Shown: one piece after another, positions 15,992-64,000 of the stretch
How the letters are laid out: every line of letters starts with the position of its first letter
Position numbering within the stretch: the first letter of the stretch is position 1
Program-made: the position numbers and the translations under genes
Notes under the pieces: generated by a model
What the model saw: only the letters and a program-made list of their open reading frames with translations
Databases searched by the model: none
What the model was told of the DNA's origin: nothing
DNA from: Macrostomum hystrix
Taxonomy: Eukaryota; Animalia; Platyhelminthes
Direction of reading: 5' to 3'
Assembly: GCA_950097015.1 (NCBI GenBank)
Contig: CATNEN010000038.1
Span: forward strand, 35,278,001 to 35,342,000
Length of the DNA: 64,000 nucleotides

Positions 15992-17729
15992 TCATAACAG
16001 AGATAAGCAGTAGAACAGCAGCAGAAGCCAAGCAAGCAAATGCGTCTTCGAAAGCCACAAAGTCAATCTCGAATTGCAGTCGCGACGTAGTTGAAGTCTG
16101 TCAATGGGTCCGTTGCACAATGGCTGCTGACAGCAGATGATACTGGCACTTTCGTAGCAGACGCTTGGTACGGGAAGTCGAATGACAGGGCCAGAACTCG
16201 ACACTATTACCTGTTGAGTTTGGAAGAGATAAGGGGCACAAGAAGTGATTAACAGTTGAAAAACAACGCTATTTTCCCTCTGGGGAAAGACCACAGGAGT
16301 TGCAAATACCCACTGCCTACTTGACGATAGCTCCCAAACCGAATGACCAGTTTTCGTGAGAGTATAAACAAGTTTTCGCCCTTTTCGGATAAACTGACTA
16401 CCTTTTTAAGCCTTCCGAGTAAGCACCGTCGAGATATTCAGCGATGATTATCGAGTGACAAGGACAACAATTATTGCAATGTATAAACCTTTTTCCATTT
16501 TGGTTGAAAAAAAACTAAGAATATAGTCAATACAATAAAACCGAAGTGGTTATATGATGGATTTTGTGGCTCTTGCCACCAGACACTCTTGCTGTTTCTA
16601 CGGTTAGGAGATAAAAGGATTGACGAGCCCAAATATTAAAATGTGTATTCTTGAGCAAGGCCTTCATTCTCTAGAGCTTCAGTTCAACCAGCTGTAAAAT
16701 GAGTGTGAATTAAGCCTCCACAGTCCATCGACTGAAAAGCTTACACAGTAAGCTAATAATATTTGCTAGAAATTTGTTTTTCGATTTCTTTGTTGATCAA
16801 TTTTGCGAGTGCTGCAATAATGAAATTTATTCACTGAAACCATCATCCTAAGTTTGGGGTGGTGAGTAGCAGAGCGGTTAACGCGTTTGCCTCTCGCATC
16901 AAGTTCGATTCCACGACGAGGCCACGTTTATTTGGGGCGCAGCCGCGGAGAGAAGGCTTGGAGGCTTGTCGTGCGCTTTATGCCATAGAGGGCCAACCTC
17001 CAAGGCTCAGTGAAAGTGTACACTGCCTGACGATGAGACAGTCAGGGCAGATGTGTAGTTCGTACACACGTGTGAGTTTGAGTCATTGCCTCCTCGCTGG
17101 CTGCGAGTCTACTGTCACCAAATGATGTGCCAGTGTTTACAGCTCTCTTGCTATATTGTTCATATTATTAAACAAAGTTTCTGTAACTATGTAATAATGC
17201 TCTGTACTGTAAGCACATCACAACTAGCTTACCACGCAGTATTTTCCACTAGCTGTTGGTGTCTGCTCATCGACTGTCGGACAGTTCTGACAGTTGTAGC
17301 AAATGATTCTGGAGTCGGCACTGCTGTTGCCCTGAGCTATGGCGAACGGTGCTAGAATTTTTGAGGGGGATTTTTAAGGGTCTTGAAGATATTCAAGGAC
17401 AGAATTTTCGGATTATGTAGGATTGGAATTTGAAAATAATTTGAAGATACTTTGAGATGGGATTTGAAGATTAGTGCTCAGCGCTTTGTCCTGAAATGAT
17501 TTGAGATGGGATTTCAGGATGGGATGGGATTTTAACATAATTGGAGACGGGATTTCGGAATATTTTCAGATGAGATTTAACGATAAAAGCGACCAAGAAA
17601 TTGTTCTTTGCCAATCAATTCTCGTTTTAAGTGTAAGAGACAAAAATGTGAGATGTTTTTATTTAAATACTTGCTATGGAACTCACTCAAATAGATTAGC
17701 AATCCAAGTATGATTCCACAATGGTTCAT
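15992..17729 (-). CDS. Ly6/uPAR three-finger protein 'E' (divergent paralog), 3 exons (17729-17687, 17351-17233, 16210-15992), 126 aa
   Basis: MNHCGIILGLLIYL|TPFAIAQGNSSADSRIICYNCQNCPTVDEQTPTASGKYCV|VIVSSSGPVIRLPVPSVCYESASIICCQQPLCNG... ending in a hydrophobic tail. GT-AG introns in phases 1 and 0, as in A-D; CCxxxxCN signature. Confidence 0.82.
16855..17150 (+). mobile_element. tRNA-SINE copy in intron 2 of gene E
   Basis: Direct match to 3878-4235. Confidence 0.75.
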
Positions 17730-18454
17730 GTTGTCGAAAATTTCAGAAAACTTTCTAATTATTTTTAAACGTGCCTATCAAAGTGTGGACAGAAGCCTAT
17801 AAATTTATAAGCGTATTCAGGTGTAAGCAGTGATGGATACCTGTGGCAGACATGAAGGCTATTTTCGACAAAAAATCACTGGCTACATGAATTAATCCAG
17901 CATGTTTGCAATGGGTGCTTTGCTGTGCATTCTCTAGCTGATTGCAAGGGAGGTCAATATTACTTGCAAACTGTTATGTGCTTTATGTACAGATCTCTCT
18001 ATCATAGTAGTGCGTACATCTCCTTCTATACTGACTCCTTCCATCTAACCCTCCGAACATGCAGCATCTCCCCCTTCCCCTGTGTACGGCACGGCCTTCT
18101 AAATTCACTTTCCGAACTTTCACTCCGTCAAAAAATCGTGTGCGTTTATGGTTCTATCACTTTACCAGTAGCGTAGGGAAATTGAGAGATGTACTTTATC
18201 GTCTTATATTTACATGTACATGAAGATGTACGTATAAATCTTATCGTACATAAAAAAATCTGTCATAATTTTATCGCGCCAGAATTTCATCTCATCTCTC
18301 GAGTATCTCATCTCTCCCCTATCTCTTCTCTCCTGGGTCTCATCTCTCCTGTTTCTCATCTCTCCCCTATTTCTTCTCTCCTGTGGCTCATTTCTCCTGT
18401 GTCTCATCTCTAACCTTTCTCATGTCTCCACTATCTCATATTTCTAAAGTCAAT

Positions 18455-19285
18455 GCTACAGAACTGAGATTCTTCAGGACTGCAAAGCTACTGGACTGAG
18501 ATTCTTCAGGACTGCAAAGCTACTGGACTGAGATTCTTCAGGACTGCAAAGCTACTGGACTGAGATTCTTCAGGACTGCAAAGCTACTGGACTGAGATTC
18601 TTCAGGACTGCAAAGCTACTGGACTGAGATTCTTCAGGACTGCAAAGCTACTGGACTGAGATTCTTCAGGACTGCACAGCTACTGGACTGAGATTCTTCA
18701 GGACTGCAAAGCTACTGGACTGAGATTCTTCAGGACTGCACAGCTACTGGACTGAGATTCTTCAGGACTGCAAACTTACTGGACTGAGATTCTTCAGGAC
18801 TGCACAGCTACTGGACTGAGATTCTTCAGGACTGCAAAGCTACTGGACTGAGATTCTTCAGGACTGCAAAGCTACTGGACTGAGATTCTTCAGGACTGCA
18901 AAGCTACTGGACTGAGATTCTTCAGGACTGCAAAGCTACTGGACTGAGATTCTTCAGGACTGCAAAGCTACTGGACTGAGATTCTTCAGGACTGCACAGC
19001 TACTGGACTGAGATTCTTCAGGACTGCAAAGCTACTGGACTGAGATTCTTCAGGACTGCACAGCTACTGGACTGAGATTCTTCAGGACTGCAAACTTACT
19101 GGACTGAGATTCTTCAGGACTGCACAGCTACTGGACTGAGATTCTTCAGGACTGCAAAGCTACTGGACTGAGATTCTTCAGGACTGCAAAGCTACTGGAC
19201 TGAGATTCTTCAGGACTGCAAAGCTACTGGACTGAGATTCTTCAGGACTGCAAAGCTACTGGACTGAGATTCTTCAGGACTGCAC
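18455..19285. repeat. 32-bp satellite array (GGACTGCAAAGCTACTGGACTGAGATTCTTCA), intergenic between genes A and E
   Basis: About 26 highly homogeneous copies. Confidence 0.96.
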
Positions 19286-19632: not shown

Positions 19633-22206
19633 TTATAGGCTGCAGTTGCTGACAATCTGCTGCAGGACAACCGAAACTATCAGAAGGAACAGAGCACCAG
19701 ACACTTGATGGCCGGTGTTGCACAGGTTAGATACGCAGCAGTATGAATAATCCAGTACCTCAAGGCAGAACGGAACAGCGCTTCTAGCGACAATTCCTTT
19801 CACAACCAATTTCTGTTTGTTAAATTGTTAAAAAGTAAATTCTATTCAGAGGTTGCATCGGAAAGATTTAGGGATTAGAAATCATATTCATTTGGTGGCA
19901 GACTCAAGTCTATGTGCATGGCCTCCTAAAGATTCCTACTCAGGGACTTTGGTGTGAGAGGCAAACGTGCGAACAAATCTCTCCCTCAGCCCCAGATAAT
20001 GAAAAGTTTAGTTTGATATTTTAACCACAAGTAAAATAAATTTTTGTGTTTTTTCGAATCCAATTGACAGGACTGCAAACTTACTGGACTGAGATTCTTC
20101 AGGACTGCAAAGCTACTGGACTAAGATTCGTCAGGACTGCAAAGCTACTGGACTGGGATTCTTCAGGACAGCGGATCTACTGGGCTGAGATTCTTCAGGA
20201 CTGCAAAGCTTCTGGACTGAGATTCTTCAGGACTGCAAACTTACTGGACTGAGATTCTTCAGGACTGCAAAGCTACCGGACTGAGATTCTTCAGGACTGC
20301 AAAGCTACTGGACTGAGATTCTTCAGGACTGCAAAGCTACTGGACTGAGATTCTTCAGGACTGCAAAGCTATGGACTGAGATTCTTTAGGACTGCAAAGC
20401 TACTGGACTAAGATTCTTCAGGACTGCGGATCTACTGGAATGAGATTCTTCAGGACTGCGGATCTACTGGAATGAGATTCTTCAGGACTGCGGATCTACT
20501 GGAATGAGATTCTTCAGGACTGCGGATCTACTGGACTGAGATTCTTCAGAACTGCAAAGCTTCTGGACTGAGATTCTTCAGGACTGCAAACTTACTGGAC
20601 TGAGATTCTTCAGGACTGCAAAGCTACTGGACTGAGATTCTTCAGGACTGCAAAGCTATGGACTGAGATTCTTTAGGACTGCAAAGCTACTGGACTAAGA
20701 TTCTTCAGGACTGCGGATCTAATGGAATGAGATTCTTCAGGACTGCGGATCTACTGGAATGAGATTCTTCAGGACTGCGGATCTACTGGAATGAGATTCT
20801 TCAGGACTGCGGATCTACTGGACTGAGATTCTTCAGGACTGCAAAGCTTCTGGACTGAGATTCTTCAGGACTGCAAACTTACTGGACTGAGATTCTTCAG
20901 GACTGGAAACTTACTGGACTGAGATTCTTCAGGACTGCAAAGCTACTGGACTGAGATTCTTCAGGACTGCAAACTTACTGGACTGAGATTCTTCAGGACT
21001 GCAAAGCTACCGGACTGAGATTCTTCAGGACTGCAAAGCTACTGGACTGAGATTCTTCAGGACTGCAAAGCTACTGGACTGAGATTCTTCAGGACTGCAA
21101 AGCTACTGGACGGAGATTCGTCAGGACTGCAAAGCTACTGGACTGAGATTCGTCAGGACTGCAAAGCTACTGGACTGAGATTCTTCAGGACTACGAATCT
21201 ACTGGACTGAGATTCATTAGGACTACGAATCTGCTGGACTGAGATTCTTTAGGACTACAAATCTACTGGACTGAGATTCTTTAGGACTACAAATCTACTG
21301 GACTGAGATTCTTTAGGACTACAAATCTACTGGACTGAGATTCTTTAGGACTACAAATCTACTGGACTGAGATTCGTCAGGACTACGAATCTACTGGACT
21401 GAGATTCTTTAGGACTACCAATCTATTGGACTGAGATTCTTTAGGACTACGAATCTACTGGACTGAGATTCTTTAGGACTACGAATCTACTGGACTGAGA
21501 TTCTTTAGGACTACCAATCTACTGGACTGAGATTCTTTAGGACTACAAATCTACTGGACTGAGATTCTTTAGGACTACGAATCTACTGGACTGAGATTCT
21601 TTAGGACTACGAATCTACTGGACTGAGATTCTTTAGGACTACGAATCTACTGGACTGAGATTCTTTAGGACTACGAATCTACTGGACTGAGATTCTTTAG
21701 GACTACGAATCTACTGGACTGAGATTCTTTAGGACTACGAATCTACTGGACTGAGATTCTTTAGGACTACGAATCTACTTGACTGAGATTCTTTAGGACT
21801 ACGAATCTACTGGACTGAGATTCTTTAGGACTACGAATCTACTGGACTGAGATTCTTTAGGACTACGAATCTACTGGACTGAGATTCTTTAGGACTACGA
21901 ATCTACTGGACTGAGATTGCGTTTATGTCCACTGCAGCGCTTGTTTTTAGGTTCGTGATACATGACTCACAAGGCAGTATGAACTCTCTATTATTTCGGT
22001 TGTATCGTCCACACTATTGCAGCCTATGCAGACATAGCACTTTGCGGCGTTGGTTCCAGCGATGCAAACTAAAATGTTAAAAATCGTTGTATGAAGCTTT
22101 AAAACTAATGAAAGCTGAATTTCTAAATTGAAAAAAAATGATGAGACTGTCTTGACTAACATGCAGACAGTATTCCGATCGAAAGAATGGAACGAAGTTT
22201 CAACAT
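19633..22206 (-). CDS. Ly6/uPAR three-finger protein 'A', 3 exons (22206-22161, 22068-21971, 19812-19633), 107 aa, predicted GPI anchor
   Basis: MLKLRSILSIGILSA|FCIAGTNAAKCYVCIGCNSVDDTTEIIESSYCL|KLVVKGIVARSAVPFCLEVLDYSYCCVSNLCNTGHQVSGALFLLIVSVVLQQIVSNCSL*. Canonical GT-AG sites and an intact frame. Confidence 0.88.
20068..21918. repeat. 32-bp satellite in intron 2 of gene A
   Basis: About 58 copies; from about 21190 onward a homogenised variant (GGACTACGAATCTACT...TTCTTTA) takes over. Confidence 0.96.
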
Positions 22207-27538: not shown

Positions 27539-27866
27539 CTGCTTCATAGCATTCGCTACTACTAGTTTTATCGGTTTCGCCAGGAAAGAAAATTATTTAA
27601 CTTTAGTAATGCTTTTTAATTCGTTTTCGTATCTTACAAAATTTTTGCTATTAGCGGGGCTAAAGAGTAAAAATGGGCTTGAACTTGCGAGGCTTAAAAA
27701 AGAACCAATTTATTATTCAACAATGTTACATCTTATTCGCAATGATACTCTCTAAGTACTCGTACTATAGTATTTTCGTCAGTTTTTTAGGCATCACAGA
27801 ACTATCGGATATATTGTTTAATAAAATTTAGCAACAAAGTAGTTAAATTATAAATGCAACATTTGT

Positions 27867-27950
27867 TTACAGGCTGCATCTGCTGACAAACTGCTGCAGG
27901 ATGGTCAGGACAACCGAAGCTATCAGAAGGAACTGAGCACCAGACACTTG
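27867..27950 (-). pseudogene. Ly6 gene remnant: only the hydrophobic-tail half of exon 3, fused directly to satellite
   Basis: Reads QVSGAQFLLIASVVLTILQQFVSRCSL*. The flank 27480-27830 is homologous to the 3' flanks of genes B and C. Confidence 0.8.
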
Positions 27951-28388
27951 ACTGCAAAGCTACTGGACTGAGAATCTTCAGGACTGCAAAGCTACTGGAC
28001 TGAGATTCTTCAGGACTGCAAAGCTACTGGACCGAGATTCTTCAGGACTGCAAAGCTACTGGACTGAGATTATTCAGGACTGCAAAGCTACTGGACTGAG
28101 ATTCTTCAGGACTGCAAAGCTACTGGACTGAGATTATTCAGGACTGCAAAGCTACTGGACTGAGATTCTTCAGGACTGCAAAGCTACTGGACTGAGATTA
28201 TTCAGGACTGCAAAGCTACTGGACTGAGATTATTCAGGACTGCAAAGCTACTGGACTGAGATTCTTCAGGACTGCAAAGCTACTGGACTGAGATTCTTCA
28301 GGACTGCAAAGCTACTGGACTGAGATTCTTCAGGACTGCAAAGCTACTGGACTGAGATTCTTCAGGACTGCAAAGCTACTGGACTGAG
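27950..28388. repeat. 32-bp satellite array of the remnant Ly6 gene
   Basis: About 14 copies. Confidence 0.95.
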
Positions 28389-47816: not shown

Positions 47817-48054
47817 ATGTTGAAACTTCGTTCAATACTGTGGATCGGAATACTGTCTGCAAGTTAGTCGAGTCGATATCATTATTTTTTCCATTTTCAA
47901 TTTTGAAATTAAGCTTTCATAAAAAAAGCTTGCTAGCACGAAATTCAACATTTTAGTTTGCATCGCTGAAACCAACGCCGTCAAGTGCTATTCCTGCTTT
48001 ATTTGCGATAGTGTTGACAGTAAAACCGGCATACTGGAAGGAACTTACTGCGCT
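47817..48054 (+). CDS. Ly6/uPAR three-finger protein 'D', exons 1-2 (47817-47862, 47957-48054); exon 3 expected beyond the window
   Basis: MLKLRSILWIGILSA|ICIAETNAVKCYSCFICDSVDSKTGILEGTYCA followed by a GTGAGT donor, then the same intron start as A-C and the satellite. Confidence 0.8.
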
Positions 48055-48106
48055 GTGAGTCATGTATCACAAGCCTAAAAACAAGAGCTGCAGTAGACAA
48101 AAGCGC

Positions 48107-51100
48107 AATCTCAGTCCAGTAGCTTTGCAGTCCTAAAGAATCTCAGTCCAGTAGCTTTGCAGTCCTGTAGAATCTCAGTCCAGTAGGTTTGCAGTCCTGA
48201 AGAATCCCAGTCCAGTAGCTTTGCAGTCCTGTAGAATCTCAGTCCAGTAGCTTTGCAGTCCTGAAGAATCTCAGTCCAGTAGCTTTGCAGTCCTGAAGAA
48301 TCTCAGTCCAGTAGCTTTGCAGTCCTGAAGAATCTCAGTCCAGTAGCTTTGCAGTCCTGTAGAATCTCATTCCGGTAGCTTTGCAGTCCTGAAGAATGTC
48401 AGTCCATTAATTGGCTTTGCAGTCCTTAAGAATCTCAGTCCAGTAGCTTTGCAGTCCTGAAGAATCTCAGTCCAGTAGCTTTCCAGTCCTGAAGAATCTC
48501 AGTCCAGTAGCTTTGCAGTCCTGAAGAATCTCATTCCAGTAGCTTTGCAGTACTTAAGAATCTCGGTCCAGTAACTTTGCAGTCCTGAAGAATCTCATTC
48601 CAGTAGCTTTGCAGTCCTGAAGAATCCCAGTCCAGTAGCTTTGCAGTCCTGTAGAATCTCAGTCCAGTAGCTTTGCAGTCCTGAAGAATCTCAGTCCAGT
48701 AGCTTTGCAGTCCTGAAGAATCTCAGTCCTGTAGCTTTGCAGTCCTGAAGAATTTAGTCCAGTAGCTTTGCAGTTCTGAAGAATCTCAGTCCAGTAGCTT
48801 TGCAGTCCTGAAGAATCTCAGTCCAGTAGCTTTGCAGTCCTGAAGAATCTCAGTCCAGTAGCTTTGCAGTCCTGAAGAATCTCAGTCCTGTAGCTTTGCA
48901 GTCCTGAAGAATTTAGTCCAGTAGCTTTGCAGTTCTGAAGAATCTCAGTCCAGTAGCTTTGCAGTCCTGAAGAATCTCAGTCCAGTAGCTTTGCAGTCCT
49001 GAAGAATCTCAGTCCAGTAGCTTTGCAGTCCTAAAGAATCTCAGTCCAGTAGCTTTGCAGTCCTCAAGAATCTCAGTCCAGTAGCTTTGCAGTCCTGAAG
49101 AATCTCAGTCCAGTAGCTTTGCAGTCCTGAAGAATCTCAGTCCAGTAGCTTTGCAGTCCTGAAGAATCTCAGTCCAGTAGCTTTGCAGTCCTCAAGAATT
49201 TCAGTCCGGTAGCTTTGCAGTCCTGAAGAATCCCAGTCCAGTAGCTTTGCAGTCCTAAAGAATCTCAGTCCAGTAGCTTTGCAGTCCTCAAGAATCATAG
49301 TCCGGTAGCTTTGCAGTCCTGAAGAATCTCTGTCCAGTAGCTTTGCAGTCCTGTAGAATTTCAGTCCAGTAGGTTTGCAGTCCTGAAGAATCTCAGTCTA
49401 GTAGGTTTGCAGTCCTGAAGAATCTCAGTCCAGTAGGTTTGCAGCTTTAAAGAATTTAAGTCCAGTAGCTTTGCAGTCCTGAAGAATCTCACTCCAGTGG
49501 CTTTGCAATCCCGAAGAATCTTAGTCCAGTAGCTTTGCAGTCTAGAAGAATCTCAGTCTAATAGCTTTGCAGTCCTGAAGAAACTCAGTCCAGTAGGTTT
49601 GCAGTCCTGAAGAATCTCAGTCCAGTAGGTTTGCAGCCTTAAAGAATTTAAGTCCAGTAGCTTTGCAGTCCTGAAGAATCTCACTCCAGTAGCTTTGCAA
49701 TCCCGAAGAATCTCAGTCCAGTAGCTTTGCAGTTCTGAAGAATCTCAGTCCAGTAGCTTTGCAGTCTAGAAGAATCTCAGTCTAGTAGCTTTGCAGTCCT
49801 GAAGAAACTCAGTCCAGTAGCTTTGCAGTCCTGAAGAATCTCAGTCCAGTAGATTTGCAGTCCTGAAGAATCTCAGTCCAGTAGCTTTGCAGTCCTCAAG
49901 AATTTCAGTCCGGTAGCTTTGCAGTCCTGAAGAATCTCTGTCCAGTAGCTTTGCAGTCCTGTAGAATTTCAGTCCAGTAGGTTTGCAGTCCTGAAGAATC
50001 TCAGTCCAGTAGGTTTGCAGTCCTGAAGAATCTCAGTCCAGTAGGTTTGCAGCTTTAAAGAATTTAAGTCCAGTAGCTTTGCAGTCCTGAAGAATCTCAC
50101 TCCATTGGCTTTGCAATCCCGAAGAATCTCAGTCGAGTAGCTTTGCAGTTCTGAAGAATCTCAGTCCAGTAGCTTTGCAGTCTAGAAGAATCTCAGTCTA
50201 ATAGCTTTGCAGTCCTGAAGAAACTCAGTCCAGTAGCTTTGCAGTCCTGAAGAATCTCAGTCCAGTAGGTTTGCAGTCCTGAAGAATCTCACTCCAGTAG
50301 GTTTGCAGTCCTGAAGAATCCCAGTCCAGTAGGTTTGCAGCCTTAAAGAATTTAAGTCCAGTAGCTTTGCAGTCCTGAAGAATCTCACTCCAGTAGCTTT
50401 GCAATCCTGAAGAATCTCAGTCCAGTAGCTTTGCAGTTCTGAAGAATCTCAGTCCAGTAGCTTTGCAGTCTAGAAGAATCTCAGTCTAGTAGCTTTGCAG
50501 TCCTGAAGAAACTCAGTCCAGTAGCTTTGCAATCCCGAAGAATCTCATTCCAGTAGCTTTGCAGTCCTGAAGAATCTCAGTCCAGTAGCTTTGCAGTCCT
50601 GTAGAATCTCATTCCGGTAGCTTTGCAGTCCTGAAGAATCTCAGTCAGGTAGCTTTGCAGTCGTGAAGAATGTCAGTCCATTAATTGGCTTTGCAGTCCT
50701 TAAGAATCTCAGTCCAGTAGCTTTGCAGTCCTGAAGAATCTCAGTCCAGTAGCTTTCCAGTCCTGAAGAATCTCAGTCCAGTAGCTTTGCAGTCCTGAAG
50801 AATCTCAGTCCAGTAGCTTTCCAGTCCTGAAGAATCTCGATCCAGTAACTTTGCAGTCCTGAAGAATCTCATTCCAGTAGCTTTGCAGTCCTGAAGAATC
50901 CCAATCCAGTAGCTTTGCAGTCCTGTAGAATCTCAGTCCAGTAGCTTTGCAGTCCTGAAGAATCTCAGTCCAGTAGCTTTGCAGTCCTGAAGAATCTCAG
51001 TCCTGTAGCTTTGCAGTCCTGAAGAATTTAGTCCAGTAGCTTTGCAGTTCTGAAGAATCTCAGTCCAGTAGCTTTGCAGTCCTGAAGAATCTCAGTCCAG

Positions 51101-54100
51101 TAGCTTTGCAGTCCTGAAGAATCTCAGTCCAGTAGCTTTGCAGTCCTAAAGAATCTCAGTCCAGTAGCTTTGCAGTCCTTAAGAATCTCAGTCCAGTAGC
51201 TTTGCAGTTCAGAAGAATCTCAGTCCAGTAGCTTTGCAGTCCTGAAGAATCTCAGTCCAGTAGCTTTGCAGTCCTGAAGAATCTCATTCCAGTAGCTTTG
51301 CAGTCCTATAGAATTTTAGTCCGGTAGCTTTGCAGGCCTGAAGAATCCCAGTCCAGTAGCTTTGCAGTCGTGAAGAATCTCAGTCCAGTAGCTTTGCAGT
51401 CCTCAAGAATCATAGTCCGGTAGCTTTGCAGTCCTGAAGAATCTCTGTCCAGTAGCTTTGCAGTCCTGTAGAATTTCAGTCCAGTAGCTTTGCAGTCCTC
51501 AAGAATCATAGTCCGGTAGCTTTGCAGTCCTGAAGAATCTCTGTTCAGTAGCTTCGCAGTCCTGAAGAATTTCAGTCCAGTAGGTTTGCAGTCCTGAAGA
51601 ATCTAAGTCCAGTAGGTTTGCAGTCCTGAAGAATCTCAGTCCAGTAGGTTTGCAGCCTTAAAGAATTTAAGTCCAGTAGCTTTGCAGTCCTGAAGAATCT
51701 CACTCCAGTAGCTTTGCAATCCCGAAGAATCTCAGTCCAGTAGCTTTGCAGTTCTGAAGAATCTCAGTCCAGTAGCTTTGCAGTCCTGAAGAAACTCAGT
51801 CCAGTAGCTTTGCAGTCCTGAAGAATCTCAGTCCAGTAGCTTTGCAGTCCTGAAGAATCTCAGTCCGGTAGCTTTGCAGTCCTGAAGAATGTCAGTCCAT
51901 TAATTAGCTTTGCAGTTCTGAAGAATCTCAGTCCAGTAGCTTTGCAGTCCTGAAGAATCTCAGTCCAGTAGCTTTGCAGTCCTAAAGAATGTCAGTCCAG
52001 TAGCTTTGCAGCCCTAAAGAATTTCAGTCCGGTAGCTTTGCACCTCTAAAGAATCTCAGTCCAGTAGCTTTGCAGTCCTCAAGAATCTCATTCCAGTAGC
52101 TTTGCAGTCCTTAAGAATCTCAGTCCAGTAGCTTTGCAGTCCTGAAGAATCTCATTCCAGTAGCTTTGCAGTCCTTAAGAATCTCATTCCAGTAGCTTTG
52201 CAGTCCTGAAGAATCTCATTCCAGTAGCTTTGCAGTCCTGAAGAATCCCAGTCCAGTAGATTTGCAGTCCTGTAGAATCTCAGTCCAGTAGGTTTGCAGT
52301 CCTGAAGAATCCCAGTCCAGTAGCTTTGCAGTCCTGTAGAATCTCAGTCCAGTAGCTTTGCAGTCCTGAAAAATCCCAGTCCAGTAGCTTTGCAGTCCTA
52401 AAGAATCTCAGTCCAGTAGCTTTGCAATCCCGAAGAATCTCATTCCAGTAGCTTTGCAGTCCTGAAGAATCTCAGTCCAGTAGCTTTGCAGTCCTGTAGA
52501 ATCTCATTCCGGTAGCTTTGCAGTCCTGAAGAATCTCAGTCTGGTAGCTTTGCAGTCCTGAAGAATGTCAGTCCATTAATTGGCTTTGCAGTCCTTAAGA
52601 ATCTCAGTCCAGTAGCTTTGCAGTCCTGAAGAATCTCAATCCAGTAGCTTTGCAGTCCTGAAGAATCTCATTCCAGTAGCTTTGCAGTACTTAAGAATCT
52701 CGGTCCAGTAACTTTGCAGTCCTGAAGAATCTCATTCCAGTAGCTTTGCAGTCCTGAAGAATCCCAGTCCAGTAGCTTTGCAGTCCTGTAGAATCTCAGT
52801 CCAGTAGCTTTGCAGTCCTGAAGAATCTCAGTCCAGTAGCTTTGCAGTTCAGAAGAATCTCAGTCCAGTAGCTTTGCAGTCCTGAAGAATCTCAGTCCAG
52901 TAGCTTTGCAGCTCTAAAGAATCTCAGTCCAGTAGCTTTGCAGTCCTCAAGAATCTCATTCCAGTAGCTTTGCAGTCCTTAAGAATCTCAGTCCAGTAGC
53001 TTTGCAGTCCTGAAGAATCTCATTCCAGTAGCTTTGCAGTCCTTAAGAATCTCATTCCAGTAGCTTTGCAGTCCTGAAGAATCTCATTCCAGTAGCTTTG
53101 CAGTCCTGAAGAATCCCAGTCCAGTAGATTTGCAGTCCTGTAGAATCTCAGTCCAGTAGGTTTGCAGTCCTGAAGAATCCCAGTCCAGTAGCTTTGCAGT
53201 CCTGTAGAATCTCAGTCCAGTAGCTTTGCAGTCCTGAAAAATCCCAGTCCAGTAGCTTTGCAGTCCTAAAGAATCTCAGTCCAGTAGCTTTGCAATCCCG
53301 AAGAATCTCATTCCAGTAGCTTTGCAGTCCTGAAGAATCTCAGTCCAGTAGCTTTGCAGTCCTGTAGAATCTCATTCCGGTAGCTTTGCAGTCCTGAAGA
53401 ATCTCAGTCTGGTAGCTTTGCAGTCCTGAAGAATGTCAGTCCATTAATTGGCTTTGCAGTCCTTAAGAATCTCAGTCCAGTAGCTTTGCAGTCCTGAAGA
53501 ATCTCAATCCAGTAGCTTTGCAGTCCTGAAGAATTTAGTCCAGTAGCTTTGCAGTTCTGAAGAATCTCAGTCCAGTAGCTTTGCAGTCCTGAAGAATCTC
53601 AGTCCTGTAGCTTTGCAGTCCTGAAGAATTTAGTCCAGTAGCTTTGCAGTTCTGAAGAATCTCAGTCCAGTAGCTTTGCAGTCCTGAAGAATCTCAGTCC
53701 AGTAGCTTTCCAGTCCTGAAGAATCTCAGTCCAGTAGCTTTGCAGTCCTGAAGAATCTCAGTCCAGTAGCTTTGCAGTCCTGAAGAATCTCGGTCCAGTA
53801 ACTTTGCAGTCCTGAAGAATCTCAGTCCAGTAGCTTTGCAGTCCTGAAGAATCCCAATCCAGTAGCTTTGCAGTCCTGTAGAATCTCAGTCCAGTAGCTT
53901 TGCAGTCCTGAAGAATCTCAGTCCAGTAGCTTTGCAGTCCTGAAGAATCTCAGTCCTGTAGCTTTGCAGTCCTGAAGAATCTCAGTCCTGTAGCTTTGCA
54001 GTTCTGAAGAATCTCAGTCCAGTAGCTTTGCAGTCCTGAAGAATCTCAGTCCAGTAGCTTTGCAGTCCTGAAGAATCTCAGTCCAGTAGCTTTGCAGTCC

Positions 54101-57100
54101 TAAAGAATCTCAGTCCAGTAGCTTTGCAGTCCTCAAGAATCTCAGTCCAGTAGCTTTGCAGTCCTGAAGAATCTCAGTCCAGTAGCTTTGCAGTCCTGAA
54201 GAATCTCAGTCCAGTAGCTTTGCAGTCCTGAAGAATCTCAGTCCAGTAGCTTTGCAGTCCTGAAGAATCTCGGTCCAGTAACTTTGCAGTCCTGAAGAAT
54301 CTCAGTCCAGTAGCTTTGCAGTCCTGAAGAATCCCAATCCAGTAGCTTTGCAGTCCTGTAGAATCTCAGTCCAGTAGCTTTGCAGTCCTGAAGAATCTCA
54401 GTCCAGTAGCTTTGCAGTCCTGAAGAATCTCAGTCCTGTAGCTTTGCAGTCCTGAAGAATTTAGTCCAGTAGCTTTGCAGTTCTGAAGAATCTCAGTCCA
54501 GTAGCTTTGCAGTCCTGAAGAATCTCAGTCCAGTAGCTTTGCAGTCCTGAAGAATCTCAGTCCAGTAGCTTTGCAGTCCTAAAGAATCTCAGTCCAGTAG
54601 CTTTGCAGTCCTCAAGAATCTCAGTCCAGTAGCTTTGCAGTCCTGAAGAATCTCAGTCCAGTAGTTTTGCAGTCCTGAAGAATCTCAGTCCAGTAGCTTT
54701 GCAGTCCTGAAGAATCTCAGTCCAGTAGCTTTGCAGTCCTCAAGAATTTCAGTCCAGTAGCTTTGCAGTCCTTAAGAATCCCAGTCCAGTAGCTTTGCAG
54801 TCCTCAAGAATCTCAGTCCAGTAGCTTTGCAGTCCTGAAGAATCTCTGTCCAGTAGCTTTGCAGTCCTGTAGAATTTCAGTCCAGTAGCTTTGCAGTCCT
54901 CAAGAATCATAGTCCGGTAGCTTTGCAGTCCTGAAGAATCTCAGTCCAGTAGCTTTGCAGTCCTGAAGAATTTCAGTCCAGTAGGTTTGCAGTCCTGAAG
55001 AATCTCAGTCCAGTAGGTTTGCAGTCCTGAAGAATCTCAGTCCAGTAGGTTTGCAGCCTTAAAGAATTTAAGTCCAGTAGCTTTGCAGTCCTGAAGAATC
55101 TCACTCCAGTAGCTTTGCAATCCCGAAAAATCTCAGTCCAGTAGCTTTGCAGTTCTGAAGAATCTCAGTCCAGTAGCTTTGCAGTCTAGAAGAATCTCAG
55201 TCTAGTAGCTTTGCAGTTCTGAAGAATCTCAGTCCAGTAGCTTTGCAGTCTAGAAGAATCTCAGTCTAGTAGCTTTGCAGTCCTGAAGAAACTCAGTCCA
55301 GTAGCTTTGCAGTCCTGAAGAATCTCAGTCCAGTAGCTTTGCAGTCCTGAAGAATCTCAGTCCGGTAGCTTTGCAGTCCTGAAGAATGTCAGTCCATTAA
55401 TTAGCTTTGCAGTTCTGAAGAATCTCAGTCCAGTAGCTTTGCAGTCCTGAAGAATCTCAGTCCAGTAGCTTTGCAGTCCTAAAGAATGTCAGTCCAGTAG
55501 CTTTGCAGCCCTAAAGAATTTCAGTCCGGTAGCTTTGCAGCTCTAAAGAATCTCAGTCCAGTAGCTTTGCAGTCCTCAAGAATCTCAGTCCAGTAGCTTT
55601 GCAGTCCTGAAGAATCTCAGTCCAGTAGCTTTCCAGTCCTGAAGAATCTCGGTCCAGTAACTTTGCAGTCCTGAAGAATCTCAGTCCAGTAGCTTTGCAG
55701 TCCTGAAGAATCCCAATCCAGTAGCTTTGCAGTCCTGTAGAATCTCAGTCCAGTAGCTTTGCAGTCCTAAAGAATCTCAGTCCAGTAGCTTTGCAGTCCT
55801 GAAGAATCTCAGTCCTGTAGCTTTGCAGTCCTGAAGAATTTAGTCCAGTAGCTTTGCAGTTCTGAAGAATCTCAGTCCAGTAGCTTTGCAGTCCTGAAGA
55901 ATCTCAGTCCAGTAGCTTTGCAGTCCTGAAGAATCTCAGTCCAGTAGCTTAGCAGTCCTAAAGAATCTCAGTCCAGTAGCTTTGCAGTCCTCAAGAATCT
56001 CAGTCCAGTAGCTTTGCAGTCCTGAAGAATCTCAGTCCAGTAGCTTTGCAGTCCTGAAGAATCTCAGTCCAGTAGCTTTGCAGTCCTGAAGAATCTCAGT
56101 CCAGTAGCTTTGCAGTCCTCAAGAATTTCAGTCCAGTAGCTTTGCAGTCCTGAAGAATCCCAGTCCAGTAGCTTTGCAGTCGTGAAGAATCTCAGTCCAG
56201 TAGCTTTGCAGTCCTGAAGAATCTCTGTCCATTAGCTTTGCAGTCCTGCAGAATTTCAGTCCAGTAGCTTTGCAGTCCTCAAGAATCATAGTCCGGTAGC
56301 TTTGCAGTCCTGAAGAATCTCTGTCCTGTAGCTTTGCAGTCCTGAAGAATTTCAGTCCAGTAGGTTTGCAGTCCTGAAGAATCTCAGTCCAGTAGGTTTG
56401 CAGTCCTGAAGAATCTCAGTCCAGTAGGTTTGCAGCCTTAAAGAATTTAAGTCCAGTAGCTTTGCAGTCCTGAAGAATCTCACTCCAGTAGCTTTGCAAT
56501 CCCGAAGAATCTCAGTCCAGTAGCTTTGCAGTTCTAAAGAATCTCAGTCCAGTAGCTTTGCAGTCTAGAAGAATCTCAGTCTAGTAGCTTTGCAGTTCTG
56601 AAGAATCTCAGTCCAGTAGCTTTGCTGTCTAGAAGAATCTCAGTCTAGTAGCTTTGCAGTCCTGAAGAAACTCAGTCCAGTAGCTTTGCAGTCCTGAAGA
56701 ATCTCAGTCCAGTAGCTTTGCAGTCCTGAAGAATCTCAGTCCGGTAGCTTTGCAGTCCTGAAGAATGTCAGTCCATTAATTAGCTTTGCAGTTCTGAAGA
56801 ATCTCAGTCCAGTAGCTTTCCAGTCCTGAAGAATCTCAGTCCAGTAGCTTTGCAGTCCTAAAGAATGTCAGTCCAGTAGCTTTGCAGCCCTAAAGAATTT
56901 CAGTCCGGTAGCTTTGCAGCTCTAAAGAATCTCAGTCCAGTAGCTTTGCAGTCCTCAAGAATCTCATTCCAGTAGCTTTGCAGTCCTTAAGAATCTCAGT
57001 CCAGTAGCTTTGCAGTCCTGAAGAATCTCAGTCCAGTAGCTTTGCAGTCCTGAAGAATCTCAGTCCAGTAGGTTTGCAGCCTTAAAGAATTTAAGTCCAG

Positions 57101-60100
57101 TAGCTTTGCAGTCCTGAAGAATCTCACTCCAGTAGCTTTGCAATCCCGAAGAATCTCAGTCCAGTAGCTTTGCAGTTCTGAAGAATCTCAGTCCAGTAGC
57201 TTTGCAGTCCTGAAGAAACTCAGTCCAGTAGCTTTGCAGTCCTGAAGAATCTCAGTCCAGTAGCTTTGCAGTCCTGAAGAATCTCAGTCCGGTAGCTTTG
57301 CAGTCCTGAAGAATGTCAGTCCATTAATTAGCTTTGCAGTTCTGAAGAATCTCAGTCCAGTAGCTTTGCAGTCCTGAAGAATCTCAGTCCAGTAGCTTTG
57401 CAGTCCTAAAGAATGTCAGTCCAGTAGCTTTGCAGCCCTAAAGAATTTCAGTCCGGTAGCTTTGCAGCTCTAAAGAATCTCAGTCCAGTAGCTTTGCAGT
57501 CCTCAAGAATCTCATTCCAGTAGCTTTGCAGTCCTTAAGAATCTCAGTCCAGTAGCTTTGCAGTCCTGAAGAATCTCATTCCAGTAGCTTTGCAGTCCTT
57601 AAGAATCTCATTCCAGTAGCTTTGCAGTCCTGAAGAATCTCATTCCAGTAGCTTTGCAGTCCTGAAGAATCCCAGTCCAGTAGATTTGCAGTCCTGTAGA
57701 ATCTCAGTCCAGTAGGTTTGCAGTCCTGAAGAATCCCAGTCCAGTAGCTTTGCAGTCCTGTAGAATCTCAGTCCAGTAGCTTTGCAGTCCTGAAAAATCC
57801 CAGTCCAGTAGCTTTCCAGTCCTGAAGAATCTCAGTCCAGTAGCTTTGCAGTCCTGAAGAATCTCAGTCCAGTAGCTTTCCAGTCCTGAAGAATCTCGGT
57901 CCAGTAACTTTGCAGTCCTAAAGAATCTCAGTCCAGTAGCTTTGCAGTCCTGAAGAATCCCAATCCAGTAGCTTTGCAGTCCTGAAGAATCTCAGTCCAG
58001 TAGCTTTGCAGTCCTGAAGAATCCCAGTCCAGTAGCTTTGCAGTCCTGAAGAATCTCAGTCCTGTAGCTTTGCAGTCCTGAAGAATTTAGTCCAGTAGCT
58101 TTGCAGTTCTGAAGAATCTCAGTCCAGTAGCTTTGCAGTCCTGAAGAATCTCATTCCAGTAGCTTTGCAGTCCTGAAGAATCCCAGTCCAGTAGATTTGC
58201 AGTCCTGTAGAATCTCAGTCCAGTAGGTTTGCAGTCCTGAAGAATCCCAGTCCAGTAGCTTTGCAGTCCTGTAGAATCTCAGTCCAGTAGCTTTGCAGTC
58301 CTGAAAAATCCCAGTCCAGTAGCTTTGCAGTCCTAAAGAATCTCAGTCCAGTAGCTTTGCAATCCCGAAGAATCTCATTCCAGTAGCTTGGCAGTCCTGA
58401 AGAATCTCAGTCCAGTAGCTTTGCAGTCCTGTAGAATCTCATTCCGGTAGCTTTGCAGTCCTGAAGAATCTCAGTCTGGTAGCTTTGCAGTCCTAAAGAA
58501 TGTCAGTCCATTAATTGGCTTTGCAGTCCTTAAGAATCTCAGTCCAGTAGCTTTGTAGTTCTGAAGAATCTCAGTCCAGTAGCTTTGCAGTCCTGAAGAA
58601 TCTCAGTCCAGTAGCTTTGCAGTCCTAAAGAATGTCAGTCCAGTAGCTTTGCAGCCCTAAAGAATTTCAGTCCGGTAGCTTTGCAGCTCTAAAGAATCTC
58701 AGTCCAGTAGCTTTGCAGTCCTCAAGAATCTCATTCCAGTAGCTTTGCAGTCCTTAAGAATCTCAGTCCAGTAGCTTTGCAGTCCTGAAGAATCTCATTC
58801 CAGTAGCTTTGCAGTCCTTAAGAATCTCATTCCAGTAGCTTTGCAGTCCTGAAGAATCTCATTCCAGTAGCTTTGCAGTCCTGAAGAATCCCAGTCCAGT
58901 AGATTTGCAGTCCTGTAGAATCTCAGTCCAGTAGGTTTGCAGTCCTGAAGAATCCCAGTCCAGTAGCTTTGCAGTCCTGTAGAATCTCAGTCCAGTAGCT
59001 TTGCAGTCCTGAAAAATCCCAGTCCAGTAGCTTTCCAGTCCTGAAGATTCTCAGTCCAGTAGCTTTGCAGTCCTGAAGAATCTCAGTCCAGTAGCTTTCC
59101 AGTCCTGAAGAATCTCGGTCCAGTAACTTTGCAGTCCTAAAGAATCTCAGTCCAGTAGCTTTGCAGTCCTGAAGAATCCCAATCCAGTAGCTTTGCAGTC
59201 CTGTAGAATCTCAGTCCAGTAGCTTTGCAGTCCTGAAGAATCCCAGTCCAGTAGCTTTGCAGTCCTGAAGAATCTCAGTCCTGTAGCTTTGCAGTCCTGA
59301 AGAATTTAGTCCAGTAGCTTTGCAGTTCTGAAGAATCTCAGTCCAGTAGCTTTGCAGTCCTGAAGAATCTCATTCCAGTAGCTTTGCAGTCCTGAAGAAT
59401 CCCAGTCCAGTAGATTTGCAGTCCTGAAGAATCTCAGTCCAGTAGGTTTGCAGTCCTGAAGAATCCCAGTCCAGTAGCTTTGCAGTCCTGTAGAATCTCA
59501 GTCCAGTAGCTTTGCAGTCCTGAAAAATCCCAGTCCAGTAGCTTTCCAGTCCTGAAGAATCTCAGTCCAGTAGCTTTGCAGTCCTGAAGAATCTCAGTCC
59601 AGTAGCTTTCCAGTCCTGAAGAATCTCGGTCCAGTAACTTTGCAGTCCTAAAGAATCTCAGTCCAGTAGCTTTGCAGTCCTGAAGAATCCCAATCCAGTA
59701 GCTTTGCAGTCCTGTAGAATCTCAGTCCAGTAGCTTTGCAGTCCTGAAGAATCCCAGTCCAGTAGCTTTGCAGTCCTGAAGAATCTCAGTCCTGTAGCTT
59801 TGCAGTCCTGAAGAATTTAGTCCAGTAGCTTTGCAGTTCTGAAGAATCTCAGTCCAGTAGCTTTGCAGTCCTGAAGAATCTCATTCCAGTAGCTTTGCAG
59901 TCCTGAAGAATCCCAGTCCAGTAGATTTGCAGTCCTGTAGAATCTCAGTGCAGTAGGTTTGCAGTCCTGAAGAATCCCAGTCCAGTAGCTTTGCAGTCCT
60001 GTAGAATCTCAGTCCAGTAGCTTTGCAGTCCTGAAAAATCCCAGTCCAGTAGCTTTGCAGTCCTAAAGAATCTCAGTCCAGTAGCTTTGCAATCCCGAAG

Positions 60101-63100
60101 AATCTCATTCCAGTAGCTTGGCAGTCCTGAAGAATCTCAGTCCAGTAGCTTTGCAGTCCTGTAGAATCTCATTCCGGTAGCTTTGCAGTCCTGAAGAATC
60201 TTAGTCTGGTAGCTTTGCAGTCCTGAAGAATGTCAGTCCATTAATTGGCTTTGCAGTCCTTAAGAATCTCAGTCCAGTAGCTTTGCAGTTCTGAAGAATC
60301 TCAGTCCAGTAGCTTTGCAGTCCTGAAGAATCTCAGTCCAGTAGCTTTGCAGTCCTAAAGAATGTCAGTCCAGTAGCTTTGTAGCCCTAAAGAATTTCAG
60401 TCCGGTAGCTTTGCAGCTCTAAAGAATCTCAGTCCAGTAGCTTTGCAGTCCTCAAGAATCTCATTCCAGTAGCTTTGCAGTCCTTAAGAATCTCAGTCCA
60501 GTAGCTTTGCAGTCCTGAAGAATCTCATTCCAGTAGCTTTGCAGTCCTTAAGAATCTCATTCCAGTAGCTTTGCAGTCCTGAAGAATCTCATTCCAGTAG
60601 CTTTGCAGTCCTGAAGAATCCCAGTCCAGTAGATTTGCAGTCCTGTAGAATCTCAGTCCAGTAGGTTTGCAGTCCTGAAGAATCCCAGTCCAGTAGCTTT
60701 GCAGTCCTGTAGAATCTCAGTCCAGTAGCTTTGCAGTCCTGAAAAATCCCAGTCCAGTAGCTTTCCAGTCCTGAAGAATCTCAGTCCAGTAGCTTTGCAG
60801 TCCTGAAGAATCTCAGTCCAGTAGCTTTCCAGTCCTGAAGAATCTCGGTCCAGTAACTTTGCAGTCCTAAAGAATCTCAGTCCAGTAGCTTTGCAGTCCT
60901 GAAGAATCCCAATCCAGTAGCTTTGCAGTCCTGTAGAATCTCAGTCCAGTAGCTTTGCAGTCCTGAAGAATCCCAGTCCAGTAGCTTTGCAGTCCTGAAG
61001 AATCTCAGTCCTGTAGCTTTGCAGTCCTGAAGAATTTAGTCCAGTAGCTTTGCAGTTCTGAAGAATCTCAGTCCAGTAGCTTTGCAGTCCTGAAGAATCT
61101 CATTCCAGTAGCTTTGCAGTCCTGAAGAATCCCAGTCCAGTAGATTTGCAGTCCTGTAGAATCTCAGTCCAGTAGGTTTGCAGTCCTGAAGAATCCCAGT
61201 CCAGTAGCTTTGCAGTCCTGTAGAATCTCAGTCCAGTAGCTTTGCAGTCCTGAAAAATCCCAGTCCAGTAGCTTTGCAGTCCTAAAGAATCTCAGTCCAG
61301 TAGCTTTGCAATCCCGAAGAATCTCATTCCAGTAGCTTGGCAGTCCTGAAGAATCTCAGTCCAGTAGCTTTGCAGTCCTGTAGAATCTCATTCCGGTAGC
61401 TTTGCAGTCCTGAAGAATCTCAGTCTGGTAGCTTTGCAGTCCTGAAGAATGTCAGTCCATTAATTGGCTTTGCAGTCCTTAAGAATCTCAGTCCAGTAGC
61501 TTTGCAGTCCTGAAGAATCTCAATCCAGTAGCTTTGCAGTCCTGAAGAATCTCATTCCAGTAGCTTTGCAGTACTTAAGAATCTCGGTCCAGTAACTTTG
61601 CAGTCCTGAAGAATCTCATTCCAGTAGCTTTGCAGTCCTGAAGAATCCCAGTCCAGTAGCTTTGCAGTCCTGTAGAATCTCAGTCCAGTAGCTTTGCAGT
61701 CCTGAAGAATCTCAGTCCAGTAGCTTTGCAGTCCTGAAGAATCTCAGTCCAGTAGCTTTGCAGTCCTGAAGAATCCCAATCCAGTAGCTTTGCAGTCCTG
61801 AAGAATCTCAGTCCAGTAGCTTTGCAGTCCTGAAGAATCCCAGTCCAGTAGCTTTGCAGTCCTGAAGAATCTCAGTCCTGTAGCTTTGCAGTCCTGAAGA
61901 ATTTAGTCCAGTAGCTTTGCAGTTCTGAAGAATCTCAGTCCAGTAGCTTTGCAGTCCTGAAGAATCTCATTCCAGTAGCTTTGCAGTCCTGAAGAATCTC
62001 AGTCCAGTAGCTTTGCAGTCCTGAAGAATCTCAGTCCTGTAGCTTTGCAGTCCTGAAGAATTTAGTCCAGTAGCTTTGCAGTTCTGAAGAATCTCAGTCC
62101 AGTAGCTTTGCAGTCCTGAAGAATCTCAGTCCAGTAGCTTTGCAGTCCTGAAGAATATCAGTCCAGTAGCTTTGCAGTCCTAAAGAATCTCAGTCCAGTA
62201 GCTTTGCAGTCCTCAAGAATCTCAGTCCAGTAGCTTTGCAGTCCTGAAGAATCTCAGTCCAGTAGCTTTGCAGTCCTGAAGAATCTCAGTCCAGTAGCTT
62301 TGCAGTCCTTAAGAATCTCAGTCCAGTAGCTTTGCAGTCCTCAAGAATTTCAGTCCAGTAGCTTTGCAGTCCTGAAGAATCCCAGTCCAGTAGCTTTGCA
62401 GTCGTGAAGAATCTCAGTCCAGTAGCTTTGCAGTCCTGAAGAATCTCTGTCCAGTACCTTTGCAGTCCTGTAGAATTTCAGTCAAGTAGCTTTGCAGTCC
62501 TCAAGAATCATAGTCCGGTAGCTTTGCAGTCCTGAAGAATCTCTGTCCAGTAGCTTTGCAGTCCTGAAGAATTTCAGTCCAGTAGGTTTGCAGTCCTGAA
62601 GAATCCCAGTCCAGTAGCTTTGCAGTCCTGAAGAATCTCAGTCCAGTAGGTTTGCAGTCCTGAAGAGTCTCAGTCCAGTAGGTTTGCAGCCTTAAAGAGT
62701 TTAAGTCCAGTAGCTTTGCAGTCCTGAAGAATCTCACTCCAGTAGCTTTGCAATCCCGAAGAATCTCAGTCCAGTAGCTTTGCAGTTCTGAAGAATCTCA
62801 GTCCAGTAGCTTTGCAGTCTAGAAGAATCTCAGTCTAGTAGCTTTGCAGTCCTGAAGAATCTCAGTCCAGTAGCTTTGCAGTCCTGAAGAATCTCATTCC
62901 AGTAGCTTTGCAGTCCTTAAGAATCTCATTCCAGTAGCTTTGCAGTCCTGAAGAATCTCATTCCAGTAGCTTTGCAGTCCTGAAGAATCCCAGTCCAGTA
63001 GCTTTGCAGTCCTGAAGAATCCCAATCCAGTAGCTTTGCAGTCCTGTAGAATCTCAGTCCAGTAGCTTTGCAGTCCTGAAGAATCTCAGTCCAGTAGCTT

Positions 63101-64000
63101 TGCAGTCCTGAAGAATCTCAGTCCTGTAGCTTTGCAGTCCTGAAGAATTTAGTCCAGTAGCTTTGCAGTTCTGAAGAATCTCAGTCCAGTAGCTTTGCAG
63201 TCCTGAAGAATCTCAGTCCAGTAGCTTTGCAGTCCTGAAGAATCTCAGTCCAGTAGCTTTGCAGTCCTAAAGAATCTCAGTCCAGTAGCTTTGCAGTCCT
63301 CAAGAATCTCAGTCCAGTAGCTTTGCAGTCCTGAAGAATCTCATTCCAGTAGCTTTGCAGTCCTGAAAAATCCCAGTCCAGTAGATTTGCAGTCCTGTAG
63401 AATCTCAGTCCAGTAGGTTTGCAGTCCTGAAGAATCCCAGTCCAGTAGCTTTGCAGTCCTGTAGAATCTCAGTCCAGTAGCTTTGCAGTCCTGAAAAATC
63501 CCAGTCCAGTAGCTTTCCAGTCCTGAAGAATCTCAGTCCAGTAGCTTTGCAGTCCTGAAGAATCTCAGTCCAGTAGCTTTCCAGTCCTGAAGAATCTCGG
63601 TCCAGTAACTTTGCAGTCCTAAAGAATCTCAGTCCAGTAGCTTTGCAGTCCTGAAGAATCCCAATCCAGTAGCTTTGCAGTCCTGTAGAATCTCAGTCCA
63701 GTAGCTTTGCAGTCCTGAAGAATCCCAGTCCAGTAGCTTTGCAGTCCTGAAGAATCTCAGTCCTGTAGCTTTGCAGTCCTGAAGAATTTAGTCCAGTAGC
63801 TTTGCAGTTCTGAAGAATCTCAGTCCAGTAGCTTTGCAGTCCTGAAGAATCTCATTCCAGTAGCTTTGCAGTCCTGAAGAATCCCAGTCCAGTAGATTTG
63901 CAGTCCTGTAGAATCTCAGTCCAGTAGGTTTGCAGTCCTGAAGAATCCCAGTCCAGTAGCTTTGCAGTCCTGTAGAATCTCAGTCCAGTAGCTTTGCAGT
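48107..64000. repeat. Giant 32-bp satellite array (more than 15.9 kb, about 500 copies) in presumed intron 2 of gene D
   Basis: Continuous AATCTCAGTCCAGTAGCTTTGCAGTCCTGAAG units to the window end, with recurring blocks of variant units. Confidence 0.98.

Follow-up and report, generated by a model that had tools for sequence, protein, structure and literature searches.

What kind of protein is encoded by the very small, cysteine-rich exons that recur on both strands of one 64,000-nucleotide stretch of the genome of the flatworm Macrostomum hystrix (contig CATNEN010000038.1, positions 35,278,001 to 35,342,000; hereafter the window), and why do their middle parts differ so much more than their ends? 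An earlier note on this DNA took them for a cluster of miniature, probably glycosylphosphatidylinositol (GPI)-anchored Ly6/uPAR genes. Gene models, public transcript contigs, genome-wide and protein searches and a predicted fold lead us to a similar view, namely that these small genes, each encoding a single domain, belong to the Ly6/uPAR (three-finger, LU-domain) superfamily and derive from the flatworm CD59-like type, a reading to which we give a probability of about 0.75.

The window holds four complete three-exon genes (E, A, B and C), a fifth gene (D) of which exons 1 and 2 are present, and a single truncated remnant, with E, A and B on the minus strand and C and D on the plus strand (Table 1). 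A six-frame motif scan finds the CCxxxxCN motif four times (16112-16135, 19717-19740 and 32703-32726 on the minus strand, 41483-41506 on the plus strand), each site being followed by a hydrophobic tail, and the CxxCxxC...YC exon five times (at 17281, 22019 and 34082 minus, and at 36956 and 47986 plus), with a signal-peptide exon lying 90-350 bp 5′ of every one of the latter. The resulting gene models have intact reading frames, first, second and third exons of 43-46, 98-104 and 180-219 bp, and introns that are all GT..AG, the first in phase 1 and the second in phase 0; they give precursors of 107-121 residues (E 121, A 107, B 110 and C 111). Exon 3 of gene E aligns with the other third exons at V, R, C, CC, L, C and N, and its exon 2 is matched by that of gene B in a whole-genome search (E 5e-4). 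Both the gene set of the earlier note and its layout, with intron phases 1 and 0 and exons of 43-219 bp, are borne out, the former by the presence of every member and the latter by exact models. This layout is that of a typical Ly6/uPAR gene, where one exon encodes the signal, a second the N-terminal half of the domain and a third the C-terminal half together with the anchor signal (PMC4839075).

Gene B is transcribed and spliced as modelled. Contigs of the public runs X1, X7 and X9 (two studies) join 32798 to 34034 across intron 2, and contigs of X1 and X7 join 34131 to 34225 across intron 1, both being the predicted junctions, and each of the two gaps is bounded by CT..AC when read on the plus strand. 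One 372-base contig comprises the 5′ untranslated region (UTR) from 34396, exons 1 and 2 and the start of exon 3, with a single mismatch. The spliced transcripts on which the earlier note had made its reading depend are therefore found, for gene B, at both junctions. In addition, an X1 contig with a loose end at 32726 has only the conserved tail in common with B, and the letters 5′ of this end translate to the mature part of a paralogue on C39 (L006), so that a second member of the family is transcribed as well. A DNA retrocopy as the source of the spliced B contigs was considered and rejected, there being no intron-free B-type copy genome-wide, and the coverage by X1 and X7 being confined to exons and UTRs, with the introns uncovered.

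The N-terminal CxxC and C-terminal CCxxxxCN motifs are present in all members. Searched exon by exon, the Pfam CD59 model (PF25152) matches exon 3 of C at E 3e-4 and exon 3 of B at E 3e-3, and genome-wide the members of this family, called mini-Ly6 here, are its sole matches. A profile built from eight third exons has 45 matches among all PDB sequences at E up to 10, and every one of them is a three-finger fold protein, including CD59, cardiotoxins, neurotoxins, GPIHBP1, Lynx1 and the ectodomains of activin/BMP receptors, with the CD59 precursor in first place (E 1.2e-4). A profile of the full domain also aligns with the CD59 precursor, from signal peptide through anchor signal, at E 0.007. 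The nearest language-model neighbours, used as a lead only, all belong to Ly6/uPAR, CD59, toxin or sleepless clusters.

Another gene of this genome deserves mention here, as it is different from the mini-Ly6 family. It lies at L014:956-1729 on the minus strand (C7:11.33 Mb), is the sole PF00021 match in the genome scan and encodes a larger, canonical-looking LU domain with about 12 cysteines that ends in CCxxDLCN and is followed by a long series of short proline/serine-rich repeats.

The fold was predicted on an intronless paralogue described below (paralogue J, L013:1668-1994, minus strand), using AlphaFold2 with the alignment of the family. The model has a mean confidence (pLDDT) of 79, rising to 94-97 across the mature domain, and five strands. 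Searched against the PDB with Foldseek, its first 50 matches are all three-finger proteins, with probabilities up to 0.99 and E from 0.02. In VIA-align the model superposes on GPIHBP1 with Z 8.2 (root-mean-square deviation, rmsd, 1.9 Å over 59 residues), on domain 1 of uPAR with Z 7.7, on CD59 with Z 7.0 (2.1 Å, 59 residues) and on Lynx1 with Z 6.9 (1.6 Å, 55 residues). In principle, Z below 8 may by itself reflect a common arrangement, and it is the uniformity of the match list, together with matches that span the entire domain, that carries the argument. We are confident that the modelled paralogue J is a three-finger domain; by their invariant residues and colinear alignment with it, the window proteins would share this fold.

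The mature domain has about 57 residues and eight cysteines, in the arrangement C-x2-C-x2-C-x14/16-C-x14/20-C-x8/10-CC-x4-CN. The core disulfides of CD59 are 3-26, 19-39, 45-63 and 64-69. In the CD59-like proteins of flatworms there are ten cysteines, the second and third being separated by two residues and likewise the fourth and fifth, and the pairs are 3-27, 24-45, 49-65 and 66-71 plus Cys6 and Cys9 (PMC3812095). Their C-x2-C-x2-C start, a flatworm signature (PMC3812095), is found in every member of the window family, and the fourth cysteine of the flatworm pattern is absent together with its partner from all eight three-exon and all six intronless genes. In the alignment to bucain, the cysteine of the ‘RGC’ is replaced and the next one kept. 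These alignments indicate that the family would lack the equivalent of CD59 19-39 and would keep the optional loop-I pair (C6, C9), the likely disulfides being C3-C24, C6-C9, C41-C51 and C52-C57. LU domains usually have 60-90 residues (PMC13719153), which places the present one at or under the lower end of the range.

In the proposed life of such a protein, the signal peptide would be cut, probably, after ..TNA; the chain would fold in the endoplasmic reticulum into a compact three-finger beta structure with four disulfides; and the product would be exposed at the outer side of the cell membrane. The last step hinges on the C-terminal stretch, which consists of the small residues N-T-G, a short polar spacer and a run of 13-15 hydrophobic residues with no charged stop-transfer residues, and which, read by rule, would be a GPI-attachment signal. 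The alternative is that the proteins are three-finger-like but not GPI-anchored, the tail being either a short transmembrane anchor or a piece removed to release a secreted soluble ligand or toxin-like peptide. There is something to be said for this: the GPI signal is here a rule-based reading, genes B and C carry nine more residues past the hydrophobic run, and secreted members of the superfamily exist (PMC13719153). However, the small-residue triplet, polar spacer and length of the run are typical of GPI signals, with no charges past the run, and the alignments with the Pfam CD59 model and with the CD59 precursor both take in the anchor signal itself (the latter obtained with the exon-3 and full-domain profiles alike). 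The tail is also more conserved than the introns, and therefore functional, and the intronless relatives end in classical hydrophobic C-termini. We consider the alternative unlikely, although it is the best placed of those weighed here, and keep to GPI anchoring as the preferred reading.

The family is not confined to the window. Exon-by-exon searches of the whole genome found three further complete three-exon copies, one on C14 and two on C39, and an isolated exon 3 close to the end of C39, with neither exon 1 nor exon 2 inside 9.5 kb of it. A family member on C39 sits 51 kb from the end of its contig. Exon 2 of gene B also matched an uninterrupted reading frame at C38:0.69 Mb, by which six intronless paralogues of 107-129 residues were traced, three at this place, one at C38:6.4 Mb and two on C7. 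These have the same eight cysteines as the three-exon genes and in common with them the invariant series C, C, C, C, K, R, C, CC, C, N. In a joint alignment with the intronless proteins, the exon-2 pieces of the window genes meet the exon-3 ones exactly, with zero gap at the junction, which makes for an independent check of the splice model. The genome total comes to about 16 mini-Ly6 genes, some ten with three exons and six intronless. The description of the family as expanding in the earlier note is only partly shown by these counts, a truncated remnant being present too. A maximum-likelihood tree of 13 family members did not resolve, with one supported fork only, because the sequences are too short and too divergent, and it yields no duplication order.

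Some weaker matches lie beyond this count. One is exon-3-like, in a 64-residue frame at C34:6862759-6862917 (L027; E 0.005), and two are identical degenerate full-length matches with three stops each, at C38:33367405 and 33374429; all three may be more members of the mini-Ly6 family or dead copies. At C24:4815501-4817849 (plus strand), about nine overlapping weak matches to a mini-Ly6 paralogue (E 0.4-8) fall in open frames of 469-812 residues, and may belong to a protein built of many tandem LU-like domains.

The genes diverge in an uneven way. Among seven or eight close members, nucleotide identity is 94% in exon 1 together with the signal part, and 93.5% in the tail, against 84-87% in intron 1 and the ends of intron 2, and 68-70% in the mature-coding parts, where protein identity is 50%. 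Taken pair by pair, the divergence of mature parts in between-type pairs is 2 to 5 times that of the flanking introns: B and C differ at 30% of mature sites versus 6% of intron sites (Fisher p 6e-11), and A and B at 33% versus 10.5% (p 4e-8). Signal and tail, also in pairwise comparison, differ less than the introns. Pooled dN/dS (nonsynonymous to synonymous rate ratio) is 0.86 for the mature part of exon 2 and 1.42 for that of exon 3. A mature rate above that of introns means that relaxed constraint alone is insufficient, and that either selection for change or gene conversion sparing the mature segments is needed; conversion of everything but these segments would again imply selection keeping them different. 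The finger-forming loops thus appear to be selected for difference, a pattern suggestive of putative binding modules that would track a fast-changing partner.

One could instead regard the genes as recent duplicates drifting unconstrained towards pseudogenes, the divergence of their mature parts being due to relaxed selection and the likeness of their flanks to gene conversion. The pooled dN/dS values near 1 fit such decay, as do the truncated remnant, the swelling of one gene's intron by more than 19 kb of satellite and the closely related, most recent pairs C/F and G/H, where there is no significant excess of mature over intron divergence. Even so, no complete member, out of eight, has lost its open frame, its canonical splice sites, the eight cysteines or the K and R positions, and six far more distant intronless relatives keep the cysteines, K and R too. 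The excess between types goes beyond drift alone, conversion would need to skip two short mature segments in every gene, and B and one paralogue are transcribed and correctly spliced. Drift is, for these reasons, slightly less probable still than a tail of another kind, and selected divergence of the loops remains our preferred interpretation. Exon shuffling between paralogues across the satellite was also looked for and none was seen, the similarities of exon 2 and those of exon 3 giving identical gene pairs, C/F and G/H.

The satellite in question is a 32-bp minisatellite. Among three-exon members whose exon borders are assembled on both sides, it makes up 14-82% of intron 2 in all but E. 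Its orientation is sense throughout, and it starts 52 bases past the donor in six of seven genes and varies in array length from about 0.1 kb to more than 19 kb across members. All 63 exact consensus copies listed for the genome are at family loci, which falls short of proving exclusivity, as 985 one-mismatch copies are outside that listing. In gene C the array is split by an insertion (37271-40489), which is a GC-rich 3.2-kb dispersed repeat. There are at least 40 copies of this repeat, at about 93% identity, and most begin at one common base and are truncated at their opposite end; no Pfam match was obtained for its 385-residue frame. In gene D the array runs to the end of contig C38 (C38:35342001-35345953, L009), which ends inside it, so that the array is at least 19.8 kb long; no telomere-type repeat was seen at this end. 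The remnant, where the tail part of exon 3 is fused directly to satellite, shows a deletion from the array into exon 3. The satellite thus belongs to the unit that is duplicated and is visibly a cause of instability; that it has a role in generating diversity is speculation.

It is tempting to go further and see in these genes a dedicated, variable set for surface recognition, with constant parts for export and anchoring, diversified loops, and the intron-2 minisatellite as a recombination substrate that creates, reshuffles and deletes members. This is doubtful, and so, as part of it, is an arms race against microbes, or between the mating partners or gametes of this hermaphrodite.

Several points weigh against the Ly6/uPAR interpretation. 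None of the Pfam LU-domain models (PF00021, PF25152 and PF00087) reaches its curated cut-off, the best being PF25152 with 20.8 versus 33.9 bits, and a full-length intronless paralogue is likewise below the cut-off of a Pfam LU-domain model, at 13.6 bits. The exon-2 profile finds no three-finger protein among PDB sequences, its only match being a chance one to a LIM domain. The protein whose fold was predicted is 21-56% identical to the exon pieces of the window and is not itself a window gene, one disulfide held to be conserved in the three-finger fold appears to be missing, and the hydrophobic tail could serve as a membrane anchor of another type. Transcripts are seen for B and one paralogue only (A, D and E lie outside the compared stretch), with no contig covering exons 1-2 of gene C. 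In addition, no relatives were found in protein sets of 5.8 billion and 1.84 billion: word-based homologue searches with exon 3 of B, paralogue J or the alignment of the six intronless paralogues returned nothing, and neither did a HMMER scan of the 1.84 billion representatives with the exon-3 profile at E ≤0.001. The homology is therefore a weak, though specific, signal at the level of sequence, joined to a predicted fold. The assignment made in the earlier note is supported by the exon layout, the PDB profile matches and the fold of the paralogue, although not as a clean match to a family: the Pfam cut-offs are not reached, and the cysteine set is non-canonical. Convergence, with an unrelated small cysteine-rich family ending by chance in CCxxxxCN, would accommodate those low scores, the lack of matches to exon 2 and the absent disulfide, but it is highly improbable given the coincidence of independent features (three-exon layout, flatworm-type C-x2-C-x2-C start, and C-terminal motif with anchor signal), PDB matches to three-finger proteins exclusively and superposition of the paralogue model over the full domain at rmsd 1.6-2.2 Å.

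Table 1. Exons, satellite arrays and remnant of the mini-Ly6 cluster (coordinates within the window).
Feature	Position	Strand	Remarks
Gene E exon 3	15992..16210	-	C-half of domain, CCxxxxCN, long spacer, hydrophobic C-terminus; stop codon at 15992
Gene E exon 2	17233..17336	-	End of signal peptide and CxxCxxC...YC
Gene E exon 1	17687..17729	-	Start codon, signal peptide; 43 bp; GTGAGT donor
Satellite block 3′ of gene A, between A and E	18451..19284	-	Same 32-bp unit
Gene A exon 3	19633..19812	-	Motif scan, gene model, genome search
Gene A intron 2	19813..21970	-	About 82% 32-bp minisatellite, sense
Gene A exon 2	21971..22068	-	Motif scan, gene model, genome search
Gene A exon 1	22161..22206	-	Gene model
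Remnant	27669..27956	-	Tail part of exon 3 (coding 27876-27956) and 3′ flank, fused directly to satellite; mature-coding part missing
Satellite block attached to remnant	27950..28388	-	Same 32-bp unit
Gene B exon 3	32610..32798	-	Transcript contigs end or join precisely at 32798
Satellite in gene B intron 2	33052..33981	-	
Gene B exon 2	34034..34131	-	Both borders confirmed by spliced contigs
Gene B exon 1, coding part	34225..34270	-	Transcript contig reaches 5′ to at least 34396 (5′ UTR)
Gene C exon 1	36787..36832	+	Gene model
Gene C exon 2	36927..37030	+	Motif scan, gene model, genome search
Satellite of gene C intron 2	37083-37270 and 40490-41166 (span 37083..41166)	+	Split by 3.2-kb dispersed repeat 37271-40489
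Gene C exon 3	41414..41599	+	Motif scan, gene model, Pfam, genome search
Gene D exon 1	47817..47862	+	Gene model
Gene D exon 2	47957..48054	+	Motif scan, gene model, genome search; exon 3 outside assembly
Gene D intron 2 satellite	48107..64000	+	About 496 copies in window; continues for 3,953 bp to end of contig C38

The rest of the window has features of its own. An intact open frame at 681-1709 (plus strand) matches rhodopsin-type seven-transmembrane receptors (Pfam 7tm_1, E 1e-31), and its frame is continued by a 15-bp tandem array at 1706-2782 that is open in several frames. The open frames at 6656-7270 and 8099-8695, both on the minus strand, match N-terminal subdomains of the ubiquitin fusion degradation protein UFD1 and probably belong, as exons, to a single gene. 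Between the remnant and gene B, a GC-rich region (28389-32409; 53% GC) has three open frames of 155-209 residues with no Pfam matches, and is unique within the window except for about 230 bp in common with the flanks of gene C and the remnant. Between B and C, a 188-residue frame (35154-35720, minus strand) has a sub-threshold match to DUF3504 (E 4e-6), and 35079-35872 is covered at about 97% identity by a 1,555-base contig of run X2, which comes from another organism; this looks like transcribed sequence of mobile-element type common to the samples.

Coming to known systems, the mini-Ly6 cluster is a distinct variant within a well-known superfamily, Ly6/uPAR, in which rapidly evolving expansions restricted to one lineage are common; it does not amount to a novel kind of system. 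What sets this one apart is its miniature size, the absence of one canonical cysteine pair, hypervariability between constant export and anchor parts, the tie to a minisatellite and the lack of any relative in the searched protein sets. Among the papers searched, none mentions Ly6 or three-finger genes of Macrostomum. A 2026 survey counts about 12 three-finger genes per flatworm genome (PMC13719153), versus the roughly 16 of the mini type alone in this one genome. Given their absence from the two public protein sets searched, annotation poor in such exons and standard domain models probably miss mini-Ly6 genes.

The nearest known type is that of the platyhelminth CD59-like/Ly6 proteins (SmCD59.1-7 of Schistosoma mansoni and their relatives; PMC3812095), which have in common with the window family a single LU domain, a signal peptide, the C-x2-C-x2-C start, the CCxxxxCN end and a predicted GPI signal. 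Their ten cysteines, however, include another C-x2-C pair along with its partner (Cys24-Cys45 in SmCD59.2), which the eight-cysteine window family is without, and their mature domain has about 75 residues as opposed to about 57. A small domain seemingly devoid of a hallmark disulfide is a natural test of the minimal needs of the three-finger fold. Human CD59 (PF25152; PDB 2uwr, 8b0h) is the best sequence match and has the same three-exon coding layout, but the window family seems to have no equivalent of C19-C39, has much shorter loops and scores below the Pfam cut-off; nothing indicates complement inhibition, the residues required for which were not examined. Lynx1 and sleepless (QVR) resemble it as small single-domain three-finger proteins tethered by GPI (predicted here), and the nearest language-model neighbours include sleepless-type clusters. 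Unlike the Lynx1 and sleepless families, which are conserved, the present one is hypervariable from paralogue to paralogue, and there is no sign here of an ion-channel partner.

The snake three-finger toxins are alike in size (57-65 residues), in having eight cysteines and in fold (Z 6.3-6.9, for the paralogue model). Nevertheless, their eight cysteines form four core disulfides, one of which would be replaced by the loop-I pair in the window family, and they are secreted without an anchor signal, unlike the window proteins, all of which have a conserved hydrophobic C-terminal extension. A toxin-like secreted role, considered as a candidate, was rejected on account of this conserved anchor-type tail, and nothing suggests a role in venom. 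In snake venom, mature-coding parts change faster than introns whilst the signal peptide stays constant, a pattern that the two families would share. The tie of one minisatellite to one intron of one gene family is an unusual genomic feature, and has produced at least one truncation. In Macrostomum, the pattern of a constant signal and a hypervariable mature part is met in a family predicted to be membrane-tethered, not secreted, which, in a free-living flatworm used as a laboratory model, points to diversifying selection on surface molecules.

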